The notes under the pieces: model-generated
Databases searched by the model: none
Seen by the model: the letters and a program-made list of their open reading frames with translations, nothing else
Told to the model about the DNA's origin: nothing
Program-made: the position numbers and the translations under genes
Shown here: positions 15,132-54,000 of the stretch, piece by piece
Layout of the letters: the number at the start of each line of letters is the position of its first letter
Numbering within the stretch: position 1 is the first letter of the stretch
NCBI GenBank assembly: GCA_964057225.1
Contig: OZ059896.1
Coordinates: 8,060,001-8,124,000, forward strand
Length of the DNA: 64,000 bases
Source of the DNA: Auanema rhodensis
Lineage: Eukaryota > Animalia > Nematoda
Direction: 5' to 3'

Positions 15132-15203
15132 GGTTCCATGGTGTAGCGGTTAGCACTCAGGACTTTGAATCCTGCGACCCGAGTTCAAATCTCGGTGGAA
15201 CCT
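15132..15203 (+). tRNA. tRNA-Gln (anticodon TTG)
   Basis: 72-nt cloverleaf GGTTCCATGGTGTAGCGG...CAGGA CTTTGAA TCCTG...GTTCAAATC...GGAACCT, with a T-run terminator downstream. Confidence 0.97.
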
Positions 15204-29320: not shown

Positions 29321-30539
29321 ATGTCTGATGTATTTTTGAATTTTTTGGCTGGTGGGGTCGGAGGATCATGTACAGTTCTTGTTGGTCATCCTTTCGATAC
29401 TGTCAAGGTTTACCTTTAAGCAAAAGCTTAAGCTCTGAAATATAATATGTTAAACAGGTTCGCCTTCAAACAATGCCTCTGCCCAAACCTGGGGAAAAAC
29501 CTCTTTTTACGGGTGCCTTGGACTGTGCTAAGCAAACTATCGCTAAAGAAGGAGTTAGCGCTTTATACAAGGTTTTCTTTTCTATTTTCAGTCACAATTT
29601 TATATTTTTTCAGGGAATGGCAGCTCCACTTTTAGGTGTTGCACCTTTGTTTGCTGTTTTCTTTGGAGGTTGTGCTGTTGGCAAATGGTTGCAGCAGACT
29701 CATCCAGGTTAAATTTATACCATGGACTATTTTATTATTTTGATTTTTTCAGATCAGGAAATGACTTTCATCCAAAATGCTAGAAGTGGTGCTTTGGCTG
29801 GTGTGTTTACTACTGCCGTAATGGTACCTGGCGAGCGTGTAAAGTGTTTACTGCAGGTTCATAATGCTATCCCGGATTCGTAACACAACTTGTAAATAGG
29901 TTCAATCCGCTGGACATGCTCCCTCAGGAGTCCACTACGATGGTCCAATGGATGTTATTAAGAAATTATACAAGCAAGGTGGAATTGCTTCCATCTATCG
30001 TGGTACTGCAGCAACTTTGCTCAGAGGTAGCGTGAAAATGAAAACTATAGCTAATAATACACTCTTCAGATATTCCTGCTTCCGCAGCTTACTTATCCGT
30101 GTACGAATTCCTGAAAAAGAAATTCAGTGGAGAGGGAAAAGAACGTACTCTTTCGCCAGGAGCTACCTTACTAGCTGGTGGTTTAGCTGGTATCGCTAAC
30201 TGGTAACCCTCTCTTACTGTTCGCCTACTTTAATTGAAATTTAGGAGTGTTTGTATTCCAGCAGATGTATTAAAATCTCGTCTTCAAACTGCCCCTGAAG
30301 GAAAGTATCCAGATGGAATGAGAGGAGTTTTGCGAGAGGTGCTTCGTGAGGAAGGACCCAAAGCTCTGTTCAAGGTATTCTTTCGAGTCTTGTCGTTAAA
30401 ACAATGTTGTTTTCAGGGTTTTACCCCCGTAATGCTCAGAGCTTTCCCTGCTAATGCTGCTTGCTTCTTCGGATTAGAACTGACCTTATCACTTTTCCGT
30501 TTCTTAGGATTAGGCGGATCAACCAAGAAAAACGAATGA
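29321..30539 (+). CDS. dif-1: Mitochondrial carnitine/acylcarnitine carrier (SLC25A20 family)
   Basis: [43 protein letters not shown] and [10 protein letters not shown]. Confidence 0.95.
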
Positions 30540-30661
30540 AATTGTCATACATGTACTGTGATTTTATAAGATAATTTATTACATGAGATCTTAAATCTTA
30601 AGTGCTGACAGTTAATATTATTGAATATGCAACTCGTATATGAATGTGATTGGGCTATAAA

Positions 30662-33635
30662 TCATGGAAATTTCTCTTCTAGAGAACACTCTTCAATAAA
30701 TACTACTGTTGGACCATGGGGATTCCTTTTAGGTACTACACGTCCATAACCCGCTCTAATTTTATATCTGTGAGCGATGCTCTGAAAAAAGCAATTACTA
30801 ATTTGAACAAAAAAAAAACGAACTGAAGCTAAAAGAATCAGATCGGAAGCATATTGTTCATATTCTTCTTCGTTGTCAATATGGAAAGCATGAGTGACTT
30901 TATCAGTATCTAAGCATGGTGACTGTTCATACTTCATCTAAATCTGTGTTCAATATATCTTTAAAAAAAAGTAACATACTACTTGCTCTCTTGAGATTCC
31001 AACTAAAAAAGACGAATTAATAGGAAAAAGCATTCGAAGCCCAATGTGGAATCTTGTAGATTTTTTATTTTTTTCTAAATTTAAATTATTACCATAAAAA
31101 AACAATCAATTCTTACTAAGACAATTCGGACAGAAAGCATTTTGCCTTCTTTTCAGTCGTACTTCATTAAAGCACACATTGCAGTTGCCAGTGAATATCA
31201 CACAATTAGAAAGAAACATTCGATCCAGAAATAAAACCGAATTAACTTCCATAAAACTGAAAAAAAAAGAATACATATAAAAGAATAAGATTCTTACTTT
31301 TCCATCATGCAAGAGGAATCTCCCTCCAGGCCTTGAATAATTTGGATTTCTTCGTTCAAGGAAAAATGTGGAGGATTGATCCTTTCGGAAAAAACTTCTT
31401 TCATCATTTCTTTAACGTTTTTATAGAAACTATACACTTCACACTAAATATAAAAATGTGTAAAAATATTAACAGATTTAATTAGAACGATAAGAAAACA
31501 TAAACATACATACCGCTTCATAGAAAGTAGGTGTATATTTTTTTTTTAAAGAACCTGAAATGCAGTTAATTTTGAAAAATATATAAAATAAGGCAATTTT
31601 CCTACTCTCACTACTGCTATCAACTAAGGATATGTGATTTTGAGCGTCATTATTGAAAATGTCAGTATCCAAAGTTTGCGCATTAGGGCTTGTTGCATTG
31701 TGGCTATCCAAATTTTCTTCCCGATCCTGGCTAGAAGAAACTTCGTGAACCATTGTTCTTTCTATGCTTTTGATAGATCTTTTTTTCAATATGGAACATG
31801 GAGTAGTAGTCACATGCAGCCTTAATTCATCAGAGCTGGCCTCCGGCTGACTATTGTTTAAGCTAGTGAGATTTGGAAGTTCGTGATGATCAGAAGCATT
31901 CGATGTTGAGCATTCCGATGTTGTTTTCTTAGGTAACTGATGCATAGGTATAGGTGGAGCCTCATTTTCAATAGGTATCCGAAATTGGACCGATTTGCGT
32001 GGAGCAACAGATGGTGTACCAGACGATAAAATACGATTTTTTTTGTCATTGCTATCATCATGGTTTTTACCCTCATCGGCCTGAAAAAAAAAATATGACA
32101 AGTATCTAGAGTAAAAATTACTTTTCTTTTTCTGCATTCTGGGGTGAACGTTGTACGTAAAACTTGTGCATTATCAGACTGAATGAGTTTTTTTAAAAGC
32201 ACCTATGTTCAAAATATTATCTTACATTTTGAGTAGAAACTTCAGACGAATTACAGGTGTACTGAGTAGATTGACTTTGACTCATCGTGAACAACTCGTC
32301 TACGACGGAACGGCATCGGCTGGAACATAACTATAGTAGAGATTAAATAATTAAATTTAAAGTACTTGGTTAATGTAGTAACTAAAGAACATTCAACATT
32401 GACAGTAGCCACTGTTCGACGAAATATTTCGCCATCATGTAAACATATCATTTTATCACCATGTTGTTTCGCATAAACATGAGCATTGGTGAAAACGGCA
32501 AAATCTCCGAGCTTAATTAGTTTTTATGATAGCAATACTTTAAAAACTGTAGTACTGTCAATTCATTGGCCGATTTAGCATGCTCTCCATAGCAAGCAAC
32601 ATCAAGTAAATATTCATTAGTTCGTTCAGTCACTCCACCTGGCAAGCGTTTCACAGCAATGTGATCACCACCATGATACTTTAAAAGTTTAGAAGATACT
32701 CTGAAAAAAATGAAAAAATGAAAAAAAGAAGAATATAAACTTACGGTGAGATCGTACCATCAAAAACACGTACAAAAGTAGTTTGAGATGTACGATATAT
32801 TTCAGCGACCTAGTAAGCGTAATGTGAATTTTTAAAAATAGTACTAAATCATACAACTGCTATAAAGTTAAAATATTGTTTTCCTTGAAGGTAAGTTTCA
32901 TCTATATTTTCCAAGCAGGTAAGTGTTTTGGTTTGGTTAGCATTAACTGAGGCGAGTGCTTCCCTAATTTCCATCGAACAACTAAAAAGAAAATAAAGAC
33001 TAGGATTACAAAATAATACTTACTTTTCATCTAGTTCAAAAGGAATACAAGCAACTTGAGAAATAATTTTTCGAGTAATTGAAGTTTTTAAACAAGCTTG
33101 GAGCTCATCATTACTTTTAGGTTGACGAAACTTGATTTTTTTCAACTGTTCGACCTAAATATGATATGTACTAAACAGTAAAATGAAACATATGCCCTCA
33201 CCCGTCTCTTATCTTCATGGTTCAATGTGAAAGTCACACTGTCTTTATATTTCGGAACCTCCAAAGATTCGGAATTTGGATCCCATACAACAATCGAATT
33301 CCCAAACCTCCCTAGTGCGTATTCTAGATAATTTGTCGGTATCGCCTAGAGATAAATTTAAATTTTTGAATAAACTGTCAGAGTATACCTTAACTCTATG
33401 CAATCTGACTATGTCGCCGATCTTTAAGTCTTTAATTAGATTTTGAATACGTCCTATAAGAAGTGCTTCCCCGACCTCATCCTTAATATTGAATTCTTGA
33501 ACGTTTAATAATATTGATAAAAACCCTGATTTTCACTCTATCATTCGTTGGATCAATATCTACAGCAATTCCATAAGCATTAACTGTTCCTTGGTATGGA
33601 ATCTGATCTAACTGTACGTACTGGTACCCTGCCAT
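30662..33635 (-). CDS. POT1: POT1-family single-stranded telomere-binding protein (OB1, OB2, low-complexity linker, Cys4-containing C-terminal domain)
   Basis: YQYVQLDQI...VNAYGIA...VKIRDE...GDIVRLHRVK matches POT1 OB1 (YIYTPLNQL..VNVYGVV..GDIVRFHRLK). YFNFIA..VRVFDGT..LDVACYGEHA..GDFAVFTNAH..CLHDG matches OB2. The exons can be joined in one frame to TGA 30662-30664. Confidence 0.85.
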
Positions 33636-33794
33636 AAAGCACTAGAAATGATATAATCTAAAAAAAATTCAAACTAAAGTAAATAATACAAAAAGTAAAT
33701 GCTGTGAAACAAAATCAATATATTAAGTAAACAATATGATAGTGATATGCCAAATAATTTATGAAATGAATGAGCTAAAAATAATAAATTTGAG

Positions 33795-35143
33795 CTATGT
33801 TGTGTAAAATTCTCGAAATAATTTTCTGCGTAATCTACAATAGCGCCGATGGAAAACAGAGAGAATACTTGTAAGAACAATACTTACAACATAGAGAGCC
33901 AAATGATAAAATCGACAAGGTAACCAAAAAACATCAAAATATAGCTCGATAGACCCATTTATGCTCTTACGAAGTTCGATATGTGAAACTCCCGTTTCAA
34001 AAGTACCCATTCTACAAATCACCATATTATTCAAAGCAAAAAAACCATTCTAATATATACCTGTATGAACAGGTTGGAACCTGAATTTCCAACATTCCTG
34101 TATGATTAAGTAGTTTAGTGTAATAGAAACTTTGTAGATAATTTAATCGGGTACTAATTACTCCAGTAGAAGTCAAATTATGCACAATAGCCTACATTAC
34201 TAATATTAAAAAATTTCTATTTTTCAAAACTAACTGAATGATCATGAGCGCTAAGAATAATAGAAGGGTTCATCGCTCTTACCTAAAAATAAGTTTTTTA
34301 CTTTATACAATATTTAAAATTGTTACTTACATTTGGATGGTTATAGAACTGAATAATTGGCACATGGGACAGTAGAATATGAATCGTACAATTATTTTTA
34401 TTTAAGAAATGAGCTGAGTGATCAAAATCGAACATATTAATCTGAAAGAAGACATTGAAAAACAATTTAATGGGGAGAAAATAACTTCACTGAAGCAATA
34501 TCCTAATGAGAAATTTGTGAACTTATTCATAAAAGTTCTACTAAACCTATTTTTGAGATGTGGCAAAACTGGTTCACCTTCTCCTCCTATATCATTATCG
34601 CCAGGAATATATATAACCTTGAAAGAAGTGCATATTGCAGCTCGAAGATATTAAACTAACCGTTTTCTCTTTTAGAGATTGTTCTGTGAAAATATTATAA
34701 AACCTATATAATGTTTTGTCATACTCGTCTTCCGTGGATGAAACCCCTTCGTCAAACAGATCACCAAGGAATATCACATGGTTAGGACTAGCATGGTTTG
34801 AAGCCCATTCAAATCCCTTTGAAACAAACCTAGAAAGCAAAAAAAAACAATACTTAAAGCTATATATCATTATACCTATCTGAATCCCAAAGAGTGAATA
34901 AACCGACGCCAAAAGGTTCGTTTTGATAACCAAGAAGTTGCGGATCAGCAATCAGTAAAATCTTAGTACTGTCTTCATATCGCGGTTTTGGCCACCGCAA
35001 TGAATAATAAAAATATGAAAAAAATTCATTCCAAAGGAGAGCAAAACAGATTGGACCTTGAAAAAAATAGAAATCAGTATTAATATTTCATATCTTGAAG
35101 ACTTACTAATTATTAGCAAAAATTCAACAGAATAGGGTCGCAT
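33795..35143 (-). CDS. Metallophosphoesterase, MPPE1/PGAP5/Cdc1 family
   Basis: ILLIADPQLLG, IFLGDLFDEG, YIPGDNDIGGE, LLSHVP, ILSAHDH and TCSYRMG; N- and C-terminal transmembrane segments. Confidence 0.88.
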
Positions 35144-43000: not shown

Positions 43001-46000
43001 ATACGGAAGAGTCATTTCACGTGATGATGGGGCGAGTTATTCCGCATGGAATTTTCCTAGTGTGTGAGATTCAGTATTTATTAGACTTTGTGAGACAACA
43101 CACTTGACGATTTGGACAAACGAAACACGAAATCTTGTTTGTATGTAATGAGTTTGAGGATGAAATGGAGATGAAGCAAACACATACTATAAAAAGGATT
43201 ATTATTCGTATTTGTAGAAATTGTACTTTTTCAGATTTTTGCTGGAGAAAGTACCGGCTTTAAAAGAAATTCCTTCGCAAAATATCGAAATTCCATGCTT
43301 AATCTCAGCAGCTAATGGCGATCTTAAAATGCTTGAGTTGCTTCTCGCTGGTCCAATGAGACTAGCATTACAGTCAGCTCTACATAGGTACGAGCCTATT
43401 GAAACTTGTATTACTGAAATGTTTCAGAGATTGTAATGGTACATCTGTTCTGATGGCTGCGGTTGCTAGAGGTGATAACACTATGAGCATGTGGTTATTG
43501 AAGAAATTTGGAAGACCTTTAGCTGTTCTTACGAATTATTCCAATATGCTTCCTCTTCATGTTGCAGCAGCACAAGGTATGAATTATAAGAAAAACAAGT
43601 AAAAATCAAACAATTAAGGAAACATTGATTTTATGAAAGCTGTTGTGAAGTACGATAGTCATCTGGTTAATACACGAGATGAATTTGGTAATAACCATTT
43701 TCAGTTCATTTATAATTTTTTGAAACTTTAAAGGATGTACACCTTGTGTTTATGCTGTTCAAGCTGGTTGTCTCACAAGTGTTCGCTTTTTAGTAGAAGG
43801 TGCTAGAAGTGAAATGGGATCAGTTAGTAACCGAGGCTAGTTTTCTTTGTTGTTATTTTTATAAATAAAAGTATACTCAAACACGAAATATTTATCAATT
43901 ATTGGTAAATAGATAGATACCCAGTAAAAGCTAGATATCAAATGATTTCTGAGAAAAAGCTGAATGAACGTTTTTCATATCAAAAATATGTTTTGAAATA
44001 ATTTTTTTTGTGTTTTTATTTCTCCCTTTTTGAGTTCAATTCTATGATATACATATACATACATATATGAACGTATAATATTCCATTCATTCATTTACTT
44101 CTGAAACATCAGAAAATCAATCAAAATTTTTTTATAAACGATTCAACAGCTTTTACAAAGAAAAGATTATTTCATAGGGTCATGATATTAATATTTCTCT
44201 CATCCACATTTATTTAAAACATTTCATTATATATACATACATGGATTCATTATTGAGAACTTTTCAATAATTTTTTGAATTGTGTAAATGCTAAAGACAA
44301 ACTATAACAAATATTACAAACAGTTAAGATTTATATATGTATATATAACTTTGAATCCTTCTTTTTTTCTGTTTTTCTTTCAAAAAACATTCATACCAAG
44401 TATTATATTATTGATTAGATATGAATGTTTAAAGTAGAACCACTCAAACTAAACTTCAATCCTAAAATAACAAAATAATTGTTAAATACGAAAATTTGAA
44501 ACAATAGATTTAGTTTAAATATACTGTGATATCTTTTTCGAATATTTATCCCTGTATTATATATATCTGTTAAATTTTTTGTGAGTACATCTGTTAGAAA
44601 AATATTGAGCGTAAAAAATGCAAAGCAACCTTTAAAATTCAATGAGGCAGTGGAACTACCCATCCACGACGGCATATACGCGAATTTATCATGATGGTCT
44701 CTCAGAGGTTTTTTACAAAAATTTAAAATTATAAAGAAAAAAAATACATGTATATTTATATATTATATACTATAACGTAATAATTAAGAAACATTACAAA
44801 TCAATCATTTGATTAAACTTAAATTACTACTGTAATAAAACTAATTTCAATCAAACAAAACAAGTCATTTAATTGGCTTTAACTTATGTACTCTTGTATA
44901 TACATGTACATTCATCCATAAATCATCCTCAAAGTGACTAATTAATGATTTGTTCTAGATATTTTCTGTTTATCATTATTATAATAAATATTAAAAAAAA
45001 ATATATTTTATAATAGTTTTTTCATATCCCAAGGTATTATCAACACCTTTCAATTCACTTGCAAGATGTCTTTTCTTTTAAATAATCAAATAGAATTTAA
45101 AATATTAATTGATTTAATAGATAATCTATAAAATTAGCAGTTTAGGTCAATCACTTCTACATATTGCATGTTTATGTGGACATGAACACGTTGCTAAATG
45201 GATTCTGAATCGCATGGGCGCAGAAGCAATCCTCTGGAATACAAATGATCAAGCTAATGCTCTTCATTGTGCAGCTTGTAAGTTACACTTCGTTTTATTA
45301 ATTACATGATTTCTAATTTACTTCAGTCTGTGGTTCAACTCCTGTTCTTCAACTTCTTCTAGCTGCATTTAGTTCTCGTAAACGTAGTCAGGTTTTATCT
45401 CTTAGAGACGGACGAGGAAATTCTCCGCTTCATCTTGCTGCTATTAACAATCATATAGATGCTGCACAAATTATGGTTAGTTGATTTAGTTAGACCAACG
45501 TCAAAATCCGATTTTTGAACATTATATTTGAGAATGTATTGTGAACGTTTTGAGCACGTTCGTACGTCACAAAGTATCTAATTTATATCTTTTGTCTCTT
45601 AATATATGAAATATTAAGGCTAGAGAAAAGAAGAAGAAGAAAATGAAGAAACATAATTATTTTAAATTTAATTTTCAAATTATTGAAATGAAAGGCTATG
45701 TGGGACAGATACATAGATTTTGAACTATATTTCAAAAAAAATTGATTTCATTCTATCTGAAGAGTTCTTTGTCTATTTTATCATTCTATCAAAGAAACTT
45801 TAGTTCATTCTATTTCAGCTTAACAATGGTGCAGATGCAAATTTAGTGAATGCTGCTGGTCATTCAGCTTTTGGAATAGCTTCGTTACGTAGTCATAGAG
45901 AAATGATACAAATGCTAAGTCAATATAGCTCGCAGCAACAAGGTAGTTTTTCAAAAATTAATTTCTTAAGAGAAAAAGCAAGTTAAAGTTTAAATGACGA

Positions 46001-48040
46001 TTGTTAATTACTTATACAGTTTTGAAAATGACTGTGTGATTAAGGGATGATGCGGGATGGGATTCCTTATAAATAGATGTAGTCTGGTAATGCAACCAAC
46101 GTTCACCTTACTTATTAATATGCTTATAAACGAGGCATGAAAATGTATATTATACGAATGAATAATATAGCTAAAGAGCTAATTATCAATTTGTGTTAGC
46201 ATTTTTATAGTAAGATCATGTTTAAATAGACATGATTGAATAAAACATTTTGGAAAGATAACAAGAAAATTAATGAGAATGAGGGGAATAAGTGCTGAAT
46301 GATCACTAGGATGAAGCTTTATATTTTGAAAAAGACCAATTTTGGTATAAAAGTTTGGATGCTGTTCAGCTAAAACATAATAGTCTAATATAGACATACA
46401 TTTCACGTTAACATTACGAACTCGTGTTCAAATTTCAATACTGCAATATGACAGCTGTGAATTGGTTAAAAAGAGAGAGGTGGGAGGAGAAATGATCTCA
46501 TGTGAATTGTTTTATTATGTATTATCTTCAGTATTTATGTCAGAGAAATACTCATACTAGTCTACTAAAGTATATTATTTTACTTAGTGAAGTGACATCT
46601 GACATTAAAGCTTGTAATATGTACAAAACAAGTTGTAACTTTTGAATTGAATAGCATTTTTTGATGTTAATATTAAGTATTTGGATATTTATTTATTTCA
46701 TCAAAGCATTTAAGAATAAAAAATGATAATGACAAAGATTTGTTTAAACCCAAAAAAAAATTATTTTGGATATTTGTTTGAGATCCAGAGCTCATTTCAT
46801 AAAATAACTAAGATCATCTGTTAAACATTTGGAAATATGTTTAGAGTAATTTCTTACGTTTTCAGGCAAAAAATCGAAGAAAGTTCAATCTACATCACCA
46901 GGTCGTGATATAACGTTAGACGTGAAGTCACAAACCAAAAAAATTTCACAAGAAAGTCCTGCATCCGGTTACTCTTCAATGCCATCAGGAGATCATTTTC
47001 AACGATCAAATCTTTCACCTCATGCATTAAGCTCTGGCTATTCATCTGCTGGGGAGATGTACCCAGAATCAATGTATTTTTTTTTTTTTGATTTTGTTTT
47101 TATAATATTAATTTGAAGGCATATAGTATTTTTTTTAATTCGATCTCCTATTTTCAGGGGAAGTGGGCCTGGAGTTATAGTTGAACGTCATCGTATGAGA
47201 TTTATTGAAGATGATTCTGACTGTTTAAAAGACTGTGGAGCTCAAACAGAAGCTGATTTGCTCCAGGATCACGTAAAGGTTTCCTTTTTTTCTTCTCTTT
47301 TTTTCCTTTTTTTTTCTGAACTTTCATAATGCTTTGCTATCTGCAGTACAATCTCTTCTTCTTTTTTTTTCAAAAGTATACTTTTTATATGTTCGATATA
47401 TAAAAAGTCTTCAAAAGAAAGAACGAAATTTTCAAAACTTTGTAATCTTTAAATGGGAAGTAATGGGAAACTCAAAAATGGTTGGATGTGAAAAAAATTT
47501 TTGCTTACTAAACTACGATCTAAGCACTTAAGTCCTTTGGAACTCTAAATGACAAAAAAAGTAGTATTGTTGTTAAACCTTCCTTATACCTTGTATATAA
47601 TTTTGAAACGAATTCAAAGAAATGGGCAGTGTCGAGAAGAAGAAGAATTAAAAAGAGCTGACAAACTCGTTTCAATGAAAATCTTACAAGCTTTATTATT
47701 GTACTTTTTATGTACTCTTCTTTTGCCTGATTCACTTCCATATTTTTAAACCTTCTAGCTTTTATTCGCTTTGCTCAAACTTTGAAAGGTTTTGGATAAA
47801 AACAGAACTATAATACTATGCTTAGTTTCTTTCGCGATGACTTTATTATTTCAACTAAACTGACATCTTTTTCAGATTTTAGATGATGCTGCTTGGGCAG
47901 GGCTTGGCTTGTCAGCTGTAGAACACATTGATCGTGTTCTTGATGAGGTTACCATATCAGAACTGAGCCCAATCTCTTCAGAAATTGGTTATACTTCAAA
48001 GAATGCTACAAAGCCAAATACCAGATCAATTGCTGTCTAG
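40030..48040 (+). CDS. Ankyrin-repeat protein, espin/forked-like repeats, with several long introns
   Basis: About 8-9 ankyrin repeats over exons at 40219, 43235, 43428, 43619, 43734, 45146, 45327 and 45819 (e.g. NMLPLHVAAAQGNIDFMK, GCTPCVYAVQAGCLTSVRFLV, GNSPLHLAAINNH). Ser-rich exons at 46866 and 47158; last exon ILDDAAW...RSIAV*. The start MHTADR is inferred from splice phase. Confidence 0.8.
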
Positions 48041-51000
48041 TTCAATGAGCCGAAATATCTTCATAACTACTTCGAATATTTGAATAATATTGATGAAATC
48101 AGTTAAAATATTTGAAGCAAATTAAAAACAAAATTTGAAATTCTGGTTAACAAACTGTAATTCTATATCTTTATCTTTCCTTTTCGTCTTCTTTTAAATA
48201 TATTTAATTAATGTTTTTGTGGATTTAATATACATATGTGATTTTAATTATCGTTTTGTCGTTAATTTTAGTTTCGATCTCTTTTCCATTTTTATTTGTG
48301 ACTTGAGATGTTCGATTCACTGCTCAAAACATGGCCTTCCACCTGTGAAATTTTTATTTTTCAATGAATAGAATAAAAGTCAAATACAAGAGATGATCAA
48401 TATGCTTTATTTCTTCAAAGATAATTTTTTTAAGAATCGTAGTTGATAATGTGAGAAGATTTAAATTATAGATTTTTTAGAAAAAAAAATGACTGAAAAA
48501 TGACTTTATCTTACATAATCTGTGTTTATATAAGGTAGTCCCTTAGGATTTCAAAGATTTAAGATTCATTGAATATTAAAAACGGAAATATATCCATATT
48601 TTCTCATATTTAATTTTTTTTCCGTATATTTTGAAAACATATGTCTTATAATAGTATGAAAACTATTTTGAAAATTACTAAAAGGTAATTCATATACATG
48701 TAGAATATGATAAAACGTATATATGAATCTATATCTATATACATATGTAGATACATATACAACAAATCTTTCTCATTTTCATCCAACACACAATTTTTTT
48801 TATTAAAATTCAAAAAAAAAAGTATATTCAAAGTTAGTTAGTTTTAAAAAATATAAAAAAACAAGTTTATTTTAAAAAAAAGTCAATGAAAATTAAATGT
48901 TTCAGTAAATACCACATTTGTTATGAATACAACAACTATCTAAACACAATTATTTTGATAAACTTTAGCCCTTTTTTAACAATTTTTTTCAATTTAATTC
49001 AATTTTTTTCTTTCCGCTTTTCCTTTGTTTTTTTTCTGCAAAACTATCTAAAAGTTTATTTACCTCGGTCGTTATTCCATTTCGTTTTTCAATCATACAA
49101 GATATTATTAACTTTTTTTTCATTAAAACAAAATAACTTAAAAAAGTTTTATTCAAACTTATAAAGACTAAAAAATCTAAAAAATAAAATAAAAAACAAG
49201 ACATTCTTACATTAAAAACATTTTTTATTATAGTACTTTATAGATTATTTTAAATAAACTATATATTATTTGATTATTATTATTATTATTCATCATTCAT
49301 ATTTTTCAGTTATAAATGCATATACATACATAGATGTATGTGAATTGAATAATAATAAAAAGAAAAAAAACCAATGATTCAATCAGAAAAAAAAATGTTT
49401 TTTTCTACTGTTAATTTGACTAAATTTTTGTAGATGACTCTCTTTTTTTCCCTTTTATTACTTCTATCGTTAGTTACAGAATATTGCTCTCATATATGAT
49501 GTTCATACATATATATACATACATGTACAAGTATATGTATGCATGGTAGAAAAGATGGAAATAGATATGACAACAGATAATAGTAATGACAGTTTAATAT
49601 AAAGAAATTTGAACAATAATCTATATTTTATATATTATATATTTGAAAAGTTTATTATTACATGTAATAAATGAACAAGAATAAAAGAGAAGAGTGAAGA
49701 GAATAATAAAAAGAAAGAGCCTATGTGATGATAGTTATGATGCAATATATTTCTGAAAATTTTAAATGCTGAACGAATTTCTAATTAGATGAGACTACTA
49801 CGGGTAGTAATCTCATGCTGGTAGCGCAACTTCATTCCAGATACACGTGAATATTCTGTAATTCATTTATTCTGAGGAATTTTAAAGAAGATTCAATTTT
49901 GTTCAGCTTTTCTTATTTAAATACTTCTTTTTTATTATTCTAAAACGACATTTGAACTTGACTGAAGTATAAAAAACATTATGTTATAGGTAGGAGAAAT
50001 AACAATTATTCTGGGCAATATCTCAAATTTCTCATATATGAAAGAAAGTCAAAGGGTCAACAGACAGGATATCAAACTGACATTTAAGAACATTTGTTTG
50101 TTACTTAAGTATTAAGCAAGTATATACGTCATTCACATAACTATTACCATGCTATTCAGTTCCTGATTGATTCCTAAAACAGATAGGTTTCCGGTTCTTG
50201 AGCGACTACTTAATTCACTTGAATTTTAGGATCATAAGAACACTGGAAAAGCCCAAAAAAATCTAATTCAGTGAAAAGGAGAGGGGGAGGGCAAAGACAG
50301 CTAGAGATAAACCGCTTTATAGATGGAGATGGAGCATGGTGTTGGTGTTGATGAAACAGGCTCCGCCCCTCTTCCTATGACTACTTTGGTCTCTCATTTT
50401 GTTCCGTCCTACCTCTTTCTATTCCTTCTTTTTTCCCCTTTCTCCCTCGTTTTCTCCTCATCATCCGTTAGAATTTTCTCTCGCTCTTTCTATCTTATCT
50501 TCTTTCTTACCTCGTTTCGTGTGCCTTTGTAGCTGCTCCTCCCCTTTTCTTCCAGTGTCTTTATCTTTTCCTCTTTACCCTATAAGCGTCTTCAAGAACA
50601 AAAATATTAAGAATATTAAGACTTGAAGTCGTTCAACTTGAATTTATTTGGCTTTGTTTGGTGAACTCATACGTTGATCATGGATTCCTTTTTACCTGCC
50701 TTACTTTCTTCGTTATTGTTGTCAGGTTGTTTCCATTTTCTTCCATCTCTTTTTGGTAAAACTTGAACATTAGATAATTGATTGTGTACGTTAAGCTTCG
50801 TTTTCAACCTAATCATCGAAGCAGACTTAACTCATCCACTTGAAACTTTACTATCAATCTATCCACTTCATTCGTTTTCTTCCCCTTTAATACAAAAGTT
50901 TGGGTACACACAAACATGTTAATCTAAAGAAGTTGATTCTTGTTGTTCTTGAAATCCGCTATCCCAATTCGTTGAACACGAATATTCCGCTTTATGACTT

Positions 51001-54000
51001 CTAAATATAAAAGGTTGCACTCTATTTTAGATTCATACATATATCCTGAGTCTATATGCTATGGTTTCGGGCGAATAACCCGTTGAAGTTATATATATAT
51101 AACAACCTAGTTAAGTAACTTTCAATCCGATTTATTTTAATACTTTGAAGAACGAAAGTTTTTTTTCCTTGACACTTGTTCATTTTACCTATCAGTACGG
51201 CATGAACAACTTCTTTGAAGTTCGATGCTGCATAAGATCGAAGAAGAGGAATTCAACTTCCTCGCAAATCTATACCTCAAAACCATGCTGTCTTCATAAT
51301 GATTTTTCACTAGTCTTCTCAAGACAATTATCTTTCTTTTTTTCTTTTTGTTCATATTTAAATTCTCCCACATTATTGAGATCACGTTCACTTTAATAAT
51401 CTTCAAATTTTAATTCCTGAATCTTCAACATTCATATATTCTACGTAATTTATAAAGTATTCTATATGTTTGTTATACATATGTCTGTTACTAGTTGGTC
51501 AGCTCAATCTTTTAAATCCAAAAATAACATATACTTTATCCTCATCATTATCATCATCATCATCATTATTATAATCTATTATACAATTCATTTTCATGTT
51601 TTTTAATATAAAAATGGCCACATGTTCATGAAATCCTTCTTGTTCAGCAGACATGTTTGTTAACTATTCTTTGTTGATACTCCACTTTCTTATGTCCTCT
51701 TTCTATTCGCTCAGTTATCTATACTCTTTTGTCTTACATCCATTCTGTCTTACCTTCGTTCATTTTAATATACTGAAGTTGGAGCTCTGACTTCTGTTTT
51801 GTTGAACTTATTTACAATGTCCTGTTTGTTGATACACAGCTTCCCTCATAATTCCTCCCCGTATAGCTTGAACTATAATGAAACAGGAACCGGTAGACTT
51901 ACATATGTAACTAATATTCAAATAATCTTTGTTTTTTTGCTAAGACCTATGAAAACAAGATTAGTAATGACTATATTGAAAGATCAAAGTTAATATAAGA
52001 ACATCGAAGAGGCGTTTTAGTATAATAATGATCTTAAGTTCATGAAGACCAAGAACAACCAAAATGTAGTATCACATCGTCTTACTCAGTAAAAGACCAA
52101 TAATAATCAATGTGCTTGCTTCAATTCATTTTTCTTTTCTCACTGTCATTTTAACAAAAAAATGCTGTTGTTAGTTGTCTTCTTCCTTCAATTTCAATTT
52201 GTATAATTATGTAAATGAATAGAAATAACGAGGCTTATTAAGCTCAGATTCACGTCGCTATTTTGCAGAAGCCTGACAACCATTGATGACGACAACATTT
52301 AAGTTCATGATTTTCTCCGTTTTTCTCTCATATCTATATATGTCACATTTGGCATCGTGTTCTTCATTTTCTGATCATGACGAGCAAAATTGTCGTTCTT
52401 TTCTGTTTTTTGTCTTTGAGTTTTGTTTATCGCTCACTCAATATCCAAAAATCGTCAGAACTGTTTCAAATTTATATTATTTATAGATTACAAAACGACA
52501 GACATTGCTTAGCCGAGGTATAACGTCGACGTTCCGTCGAACGCTGTATTCTTGAGAAGTCTAGCTGATATTCGCAGTGTGTCGTTTCAACTCACTCAAA
52601 ACGTGAGTGAAGAATAAAAAAACTCCGGGAAAGGTGTTGAAATTATTTTATTCGCCACTACAAATCTCTCTATACTATTCTATCCATAATCTAGAATCTC
52701 CAATATTCAATAAAACATCTAAGAAGCTGAAAAAAAGTATTTAAAACTGCAAAATATATTATTTATCGGATATAAATGGACTACTATCTGGTGGAACATG
52801 TCGTGTATCAGTATCTACTTCCAGCGGTCAGTTTTTTGATTAATTTCATTGCTCATATATCACGCAATATACGTACATGATATTTCCATTTTTTTCCTTG
52901 ATTTTTGAGATCTTTCTGTCGAAATATTATGCATGAAAGTTCTAACACAAAAAGCTCTTGAGATCATAAGTCTGTTGTTATCCTTGTGTTTATTTCTTTT
53001 TTTTTCTTTTGCGACCCATCGATTTACATTATTTTTTTTCGCATCTTTCTTACTCTTTTTCTTGTTTCTCATCCACATTCCAATGGAATATGAAATTTAT
53101 CTATGGAAACAACATATCGTACATTGAACATTTATTTTTCTCCTACAAAAATTTACGTTTATCAAACTAAATCTTCTACAATGTTGCTTCAAAGTTTCAA
53201 AAACAAAAAACAACTTCTCATTTAAATTCTCGTGATAAACGATGAACTCATTTTCAATAGTTTGGATAGCTTAAATCTCATAAGGCCATCTATCTTAGCA
53301 TGTCATCGTGATCAAAACTACGCCTTTGCTCTTAAATTCAGGCTATTATCTATAAAATTATTTCCGGAAATGAAAATTGCTCTGAATGCAATGAAGAACA
53401 AAAAGTATAAATCATGTCTAACTTGATGTGCTTGAAGCAGCACTGTAACAGATTGGCTCACATGAGATCCTAGCTCAATGTTTTTAATGAACAGAAGATG
53501 AATTTTATTTAAATAGAAATTTTACATTGTTAATGTTGAATTTGTTTATTATTTCCTATTTTAATGTGGTCATTAGGAAATTTTAGATATTTTGAATAGG
53601 GATAAACCAATGTTTTATAATTTAAATTGATAAATTCATCTTAGTTCTTCATGTTTCATGCACTTTCCTTATTTTTCTTTTTATTTTAAAATGGAGAGAA
53701 AACGGGAGAGATGGAATATTTTTAAATTTATATCATTGGAAAAGGATATAAATGACAATGGTACATTGAATGTATGTCATTAGAATGAAGAGAAAAGATA
53801 CAAGAATCTAATGACAGAGATGTTAGAGATGAGAGAATTATTCAAGCTTATCCATCTATTCTAACTCATTCACCTTTTTTGTGTTTTTTTTTCTTTTGAT
53901 CGAACCATTTTTTTTTCAAATGGCATGTAGTATTTAGCTTCATTAAGGATCAGATTTTTGATTTCTTAATTTTATTCTCCCCCCTATTTTTTCCTTACTT

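Follow-up and report, generated by a model that had tools for sequence, protein, structure and literature searches.

Do nematodes hold a POT1 protein in which several OB folds are joined in one chain? The question is raised by a minus-strand gene of Auanema rhodensis at 30662-33635 of the 64,000-nucleotide stretch analysed here (the window; contig OZ059896.1, positions 8,060,001 to 8,124,000). Other animals as a rule have a three-OB POT1, and what is known of telomere capping in nematodes comes almost solely from C. elegans. That species distributes POT1 over four single-OB proteins, uses the OB domain of POT-1 to bind TEBP-1/2, and has no known TPP1 (PMC13557083). TEBP orthologues were restricted to Caenorhabditis in one study (PMC8113555), and in a survey based on BLAST the conservation of POT and TEBP proteins was limited to clades III and V (PMC12084805). 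Nematodes were omitted from the main metazoan shelterin survey (PMC8653790).

The gene is real and expressed, and encodes a POT1-like protein with a Cys4 tail. We consider it probable, with moderate confidence, that this is a POT1-family three-OB protein with an unsplit zinc OB3. OB1 and OB2 (approximately aa 1-321) would lie in one chain and be followed by a flexible linker of ~210 residues. The C-terminal 217 residues, consisting of a Cys4 zinc site and then a further 110 residues, can be read as a third OB fold, unsplit and similar to RPA70 DBD-C. OB1-like and OB2-like exons occur in one 747-aa open reading frame (ORF) on one transcript, hence the protein does not belong to the single-OB type of the C. 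elegans POT proteins. It shares the nematode phylum and apparently POT1-derived OB folds with those proteins, but each of them has one OB domain, whereas here OB1 and OB2 are combined in one chain with a Cys4 tail. We found no published description of a nematode POT1 that combines OB1 and OB2 with a zinc-bearing tail.

A single spliced transcript

The gene model runs from ATG 33635 to TGA 30662 in 17 exons of a single frame, separated by 16 GT-AG introns of 41-70 nt. It was first drawn from the minus-strand sequence of region 30400-33900, using GT-AG boundaries that preserve one frame, and was then corrected by RNA contigs. The resulting coding region comprises 2,244 nt (747 codons plus TGA) with no internal stops. 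Spliced contigs from four public runs (X1-X4; one contig per run, 3.19-3.26 kb) bear all 17 exons, with zero sequence differences. Fifteen of the 16 exon joints are listed in these contigs, all with minus-strand GT..AG ends and in agreement with the model. The remaining joint, 33481/33525, was deduced from bin coverage (32.0 of 42.3 for 33497-33607, and 35.4 for 33386-33496). An alternative exon 1 donor located 22 nt downstream, which would also preserve the frame, was rejected because it disagrees with the contig coverage of bins 33386-33607. While 13 joints are identical to those of the sequence-only model, the RNA evidence shifted two donors, that of exon 11 to 31606 (31612 having been the guess) and that of exon 15 to 30980 (from 30983).

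Of the 31-letter words sampled from 30500-33800, 56% are present in the four runs, compared to 59% expected from the spliced form alone. This agreement, together with the skipping of 16 introns, indicates that the contigs derive from spliced RNA; the RNA label of the runs is itself a guess. The first-pass annotation had joined all exons from ATG to TGA in one frame. The spliced contigs of the four runs bear this out, as exons 1-17 are linked without a stop after OB2. Across 32190-32365, where RNA junctions had been proposed as a check, 32178/32226 and 32319/32366 were both found in all four runs.

Four introns are exactly 42 nt long (4/5, 14/15, 15/16 and 16/17). Since three of these follow one another (14/15 to 16/17), exons 14-17 share one genomic frame. 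Two of these three introns contain stop codons, whereas intron 16/17 is stop-free, giving rise to a spurious 91-codon ATG-to-stop ORF (30662-30937) in which exon and intron are mixed.

At the 5' side, the contigs end at ~33659 in all four runs, where a TTTTTTTTAG acceptor precedes the ATG by 22 nt. Trans-splicing at this acceptor (33657-33659) is probable. An in-frame TAG is located 9 nt before ATG 33635. Taken together, the putative trans-splice site and the upstream stop suggest that the protein has no additional N-terminal domain, and specifically no OB-N, as the ORF starts only 22 nt past the site.

POT1 likeness of the N-terminal half and features of the tail

Homology queries throughout were single exons or stop-free stretches, mostly of 20-50 residues. 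For exon 2, the top three matches among 177,635 distinct PDB sequences are all human POT1 (1xjv, 3kjo and 8sh0; E 0.44), with IGDIVRLHRVK aligned to NGDIVRFHRLK within human POT1 OB1 residues 62-80. Exon 7 has a sole Pfam match among 24,736 families. This is the OB2 family PF16686 POT1PC, aligned over profile positions 70-93 (E 0.076; 13.3 bits, with a cut-off of 27.2). The OB1 and OB2 matches occur in the expected order along the protein and at equivalent positions. By our own rough estimate, a chance Pfam match to a POT1 family would arise about once in 10,000 cases for the exon 7 match alone. As two independent exons point to the same rare family, in the right places and the right order, a joint coincidence is very unlikely. 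Hence, homology of OB1 and OB2 to POT1 is supported at the sequence level, albeit below significance, and the OB1 and OB2 motifs noted in the earlier annotation find an echo in both searches.

Exons 1, 3, 5 and 6 contain what we take to be further POT1 landmarks (Y-x-Y-x-x-L, F-x-x-x-x-ED, QYF and V-x-DGT), which serve as a lead only; the VRVFDGT of exon 6 presumably corresponds to human VWDGT. The solved C. elegans POT-1 fragment was matched by no exon at E <= 10 in the PDB searches, and no paralogue of the gene is present within the 64-kb window. Two metagenome scans for a related locus found none.

Downstream of OB2, the linker (aa 322-530, 32318-31606) is strongly hydrophilic, with a mean hydropathy of -0.99, 44% S/T/N/P/Q and 22% hydrophobic residues. 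This matches the Ser/Asn/Pro-rich linker predicted at ~31610-32320. A word search with the linker ORF (exon 11) found zero relatives. In the C-terminal region (aa 531-747, 217 residues), the hydrophobic content rises to 40%, comparable to that of the OB1 and OB2 regions. The region contains CNVC-x13-CPNC at aa 617-637 (31183-31121, as anticipated at ~31120-31185), with 110 residues from the motif to the protein end. In 100,000 shuffled versions of the protein, the frequency of a C..C-x(8-20)-C..C pattern is 0.4%. Transcript, reading frame, cysteine motif and region compositions are thus directly demonstrated. The pattern of hydrophobic runs suggests that the tail may begin with strand 1 and a zinc ribbon, continue through strands 2 and 3 to a helix, and finish with strands 4 and 5.

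Identity of the Cys4 tail and alternative explanations

The RPA70 zinc motif is C-X4-C-X13-C-X2-C, and its 13-residue spacer is the same as that of the tail, although the first cysteine pair is C-x2-C here rather than C-x4-C. RPA70 DBD-C is an OB fold in which a C4 zinc finger separates strands 1 and 2, and in its archaeal relatives the zinc finger is followed by 100-120 residues (PMC8329085). The C4 motif and the 110 residues that follow it, within the archaeal range, match this layout and mark the tail as a candidate zinc OB fold. The protein differs from RPA70 in that the upstream OB folds appear POT1-like and not RPA-like. Furthermore, it ends ~10 residues past the last predicted strand, and the C-terminal trimerisation helix is seemingly absent.

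Vertebrate POT1 (1XJV, 5UN7) likewise combines tandem N-terminal OB1 and OB2 with a C-terminal four-cysteine domain. However, its cysteine pairs flank an HJRL insert (PMC5394241, PMC8653790), whereas they are 13 residues apart here with no insert, and the linker preceding the tail is ~210 residues long. More generally, metazoan POT1 OB3 always retains the zinc-binding cysteines (PMC8653790), with the pairs split by an HJRL domain or other insert (PMC8653790, PMC5394241), and POT1 has been proposed to stem from an RPA70-like ancestor (PMC8653790). The general POT1 plan fits with three differences: the lack of OB-N, the very long linker, and the close spacing of the cysteine pairs. Going by description only, ciliate TEBP-alpha and fission yeast Pot1 also combine two DNA-binding OB folds with a C-terminal partner-binding OB (PMC5394241); a word count of the structure paper of fission yeast Pot1 returned no instance of 'zinc'.

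As regards the interpretation first offered for this locus, the single expressed transcript, the POT1-like OB1/OB2 half, the hydrophilic linker and the folded-looking, Cys4-bearing C-terminal region all stand. Its further suggestion of an ancestral three-OB POT1 is tentative. In its fullest form, with an RPA70 DBD-C-like unsplit OB3 docking a TPP1-like or other bridging partner that has so far gone unrecognised, we consider this reading less likely than not. If true, C. elegans would have acquired both its single-OB split and its TEBP-POT-1 bridge through a late, lineage-specific rewiring.

A POT1-like OB1-OB2 protein could instead have acquired a lineage-specific zinc-ribbon tail, neither an OB fold nor related to POT1 OB3 or RPA70 DBD-C. 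We consider this unlikely, but several observations weigh in its favour and against a zinc OB3. Sequence searches tied the tail to nothing. A query of the last 91 codons (exons 16 and 17 with the 14-codon in-frame intron between them) had 0 matches among 1.84 billion representatives at E <= 0.001; by our own estimate, this rules out just relatives above ~38% identity, and it implies that the library lacks both close relatives of the tail and the protein itself. Exons 13-17 gave no PDB, Pfam or Atlas match above noise: in the PDB, the 91-residue piece and exons 15 and 17 were blank while exon 14 returned a chance match only, no exon matched Pfam Rep_fac-A_C, and Atlas feature searches with exon 14 and the tail piece yielded no usable match. 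Neither of the partial AlphaFold models displays an OB fold. Both are of low confidence, the 91-residue piece being modelled from its single sequence as a helix followed by two strands (mean pLDDT 63), and exon 14 alone as helices with no zinc ribbon (pLDDT 66). The Cys4 site is so far seen in a single sequence. Finally, the 210-residue linker far exceeds the human OB2-OB3 connection, and would suit a domain added later. In contrast, the position of the Cys4 motif, the ~110 residues after it and the protein end reproduce the DBD-C layout (PMC8329085), and blank exon-sized searches weigh little because telomere proteins evolve rapidly. The helix and two strands of the 91-residue model, although of low confidence, also count on the side of an OB fold. 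We therefore retain a zinc OB3 as the preferred assignment of the tail.

It is improbable that the N-terminal half is unrelated to POT1, belonging to another family or none, with both weak matches coincidental. Each of the two matches is individually below significance, and similarly weak matches of exon pieces to unrelated proteins do occur. Two other sub-threshold Pfam matches, to MutH and TRI4_N, were found among the 16 exon pieces scanned, and PDB matches to TPR and WD40 proteins were as weak as those to POT1. Exons 1-5 and 8, scanned singly, gave zero Pfam matches, PF02765 Telo_bind included, and exon 6 alone gave no POT1PC match. Exons 1, 3, 6 and 8 were noise or blank against the PDB; indeed, the exon 2 match to POT1 stands alone in ten exon-wise PDB searches, the remainder being noise (TPR, WD40, onconase, Fur, RpoB, uS15) or blank. 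Coincidence would nevertheless require that two independent exons selected POT1 from the full PDB and Pfam sets, with positions and order fitting.

It is very improbable that the full-length form arose in assembly or is a minor isoform, with two adjacent genes, or a tail transcript and a short OB1-OB2 isoform, fused in the contigs: contigs bridge into the convergent neighbour gene, so overlapping transcripts can be joined, and all four runs stem from one study, with contigs that lose rare variants and may hide rare isoforms, but exons 1-17 are contiguous without an unspliced gap or stop, and the 16 gaps are removed as GT-AG introns with the frame held over 2,244 nt.

Proposed role and genomic surroundings

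Based on the POT1-family three-OB assignment, we propose that this single nematode gene encodes a binder of single-stranded telomeric DNA. OB1-OB2 would bind the TTAGGC G-strand overhang and junction, while the zinc OB fold may act as a docking module for a partner protein, by analogy with vertebrate OB3-TPP1 and RPA DBD-C. A two-OB POT1 that is expressed and ends in a zinc-bearing tail would offer a concrete intermediate in nematode POT1 history, and a POT1-like protein would also serve as bait for partner proteins. The finding is useful rather than startling, as similar genes may go unremarked in other nematode genomes. The features of the gene are collected in Table 1.

Table 1 Coordinates of the POT1-like gene and its features within the window.
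Feature	Position	Strand	Evidence
Whole coding region	30662..33635	-	17 exons; gene model and spliced contigs, four runs
Exon 1, aa 1-37, OB1 start	33525..33635	-	ATG at 33635; contig extends to ~33659
Exon 2, aa 38-68, OB1 strand with IGDIVRLHRVK	33389..33481	-	PDB matches to human POT1
Exon 3, aa 69-116	33202..33345	-	RNA joints 33345/33389, 33154/33202
Exon 4, aa 117-160, OB1 end and inter-OB region	33024..33154	-	RNA joints
Exon 5, aa 160-202, OB2 start (QYFNF)	32855..32981	-	RNA joints
Exon 6, aa 203-224, VRVFDGT motif	32745..32809	-	RNA joints
Exon 7, aa 224-272, OB2	32556..32700	-	Weak Pfam PF16686 match
Exon 8, aa 273-321, OB2 end	32366..32511	-	RNA joints
Exon 9, aa 321-352, linker start	32226..32319	-	RNA joints 32319/32366, 32178/32226
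Exon 10, aa 353-371, linker	32122..32178	-	RNA joints
Exon 11, aa 372-530, hydrophilic Ser/Asn/Pro/Thr-rich linker	31606..32080	-	Composition; RNA donor 31606
Exon 12, aa 530-543, C-terminal region start	31514..31554	-	RNA joints
Exon 13, aa 544-592	31298..31443	-	RNA joints
Exon 14, aa 592-639, bears Cys4 motif	31117..31256	-	RNA joints
CNVC-x13-CPNC (Cys617, Cys620, Cys634, Cys637), candidate zinc site	31121..31183	-	Translation; shuffles
Exon 15, aa 639-670	30980..31074	-	RNA donor 30980
Exon 16, aa 671-708	30824..30937	-	RNA joints
Exon 17, aa 709-747 and TGA	30662..30781	-	RNA joint 30781/30824
Probable trans-splice acceptor (TTTTTTTTAG|A), 22 nt 5' of ATG	33657..33659	-	Contig ends; inferred
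AATAAA, 82 nt past stop codon	30575..30580	-	Sequence

Upstream on the same strand lies a gene with metallophosphoesterase-like exons, as judged by eye (33660-34050 and 34405-35087, minus strand). Its final stop-free stretch ends at 33798 (stop at 33795-33797), ~137 nt before the probable trans-splice acceptor of the POT1-like gene, and a second contig of lower depth covers 33719-33800. The two genes look like an operon arrangement. On the other side, a convergent mitochondrial-carrier-like gene (29446-30539, plus strand) ends ~120 nt away from the stop codon of the POT1-like gene. The RNA contigs of the POT1-like gene continue through it, and the 3' ends of the two genes therefore overlap.

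Elsewhere in the window, an AT-rich tract at 44001-60000 has a GC content of 25-29%, compared to 32-38% for the remainder, and contains no obvious exon-sized conserved ORFs. Three tandem tRNA-Cys(GCA) genes with identical Rfam scores and a spacing of 192 nt are located at 61125-61580 on the minus strand, and further tRNAs comprise tRNA-Gln (15132-15203) and tRNA-Lys (63006-63080).
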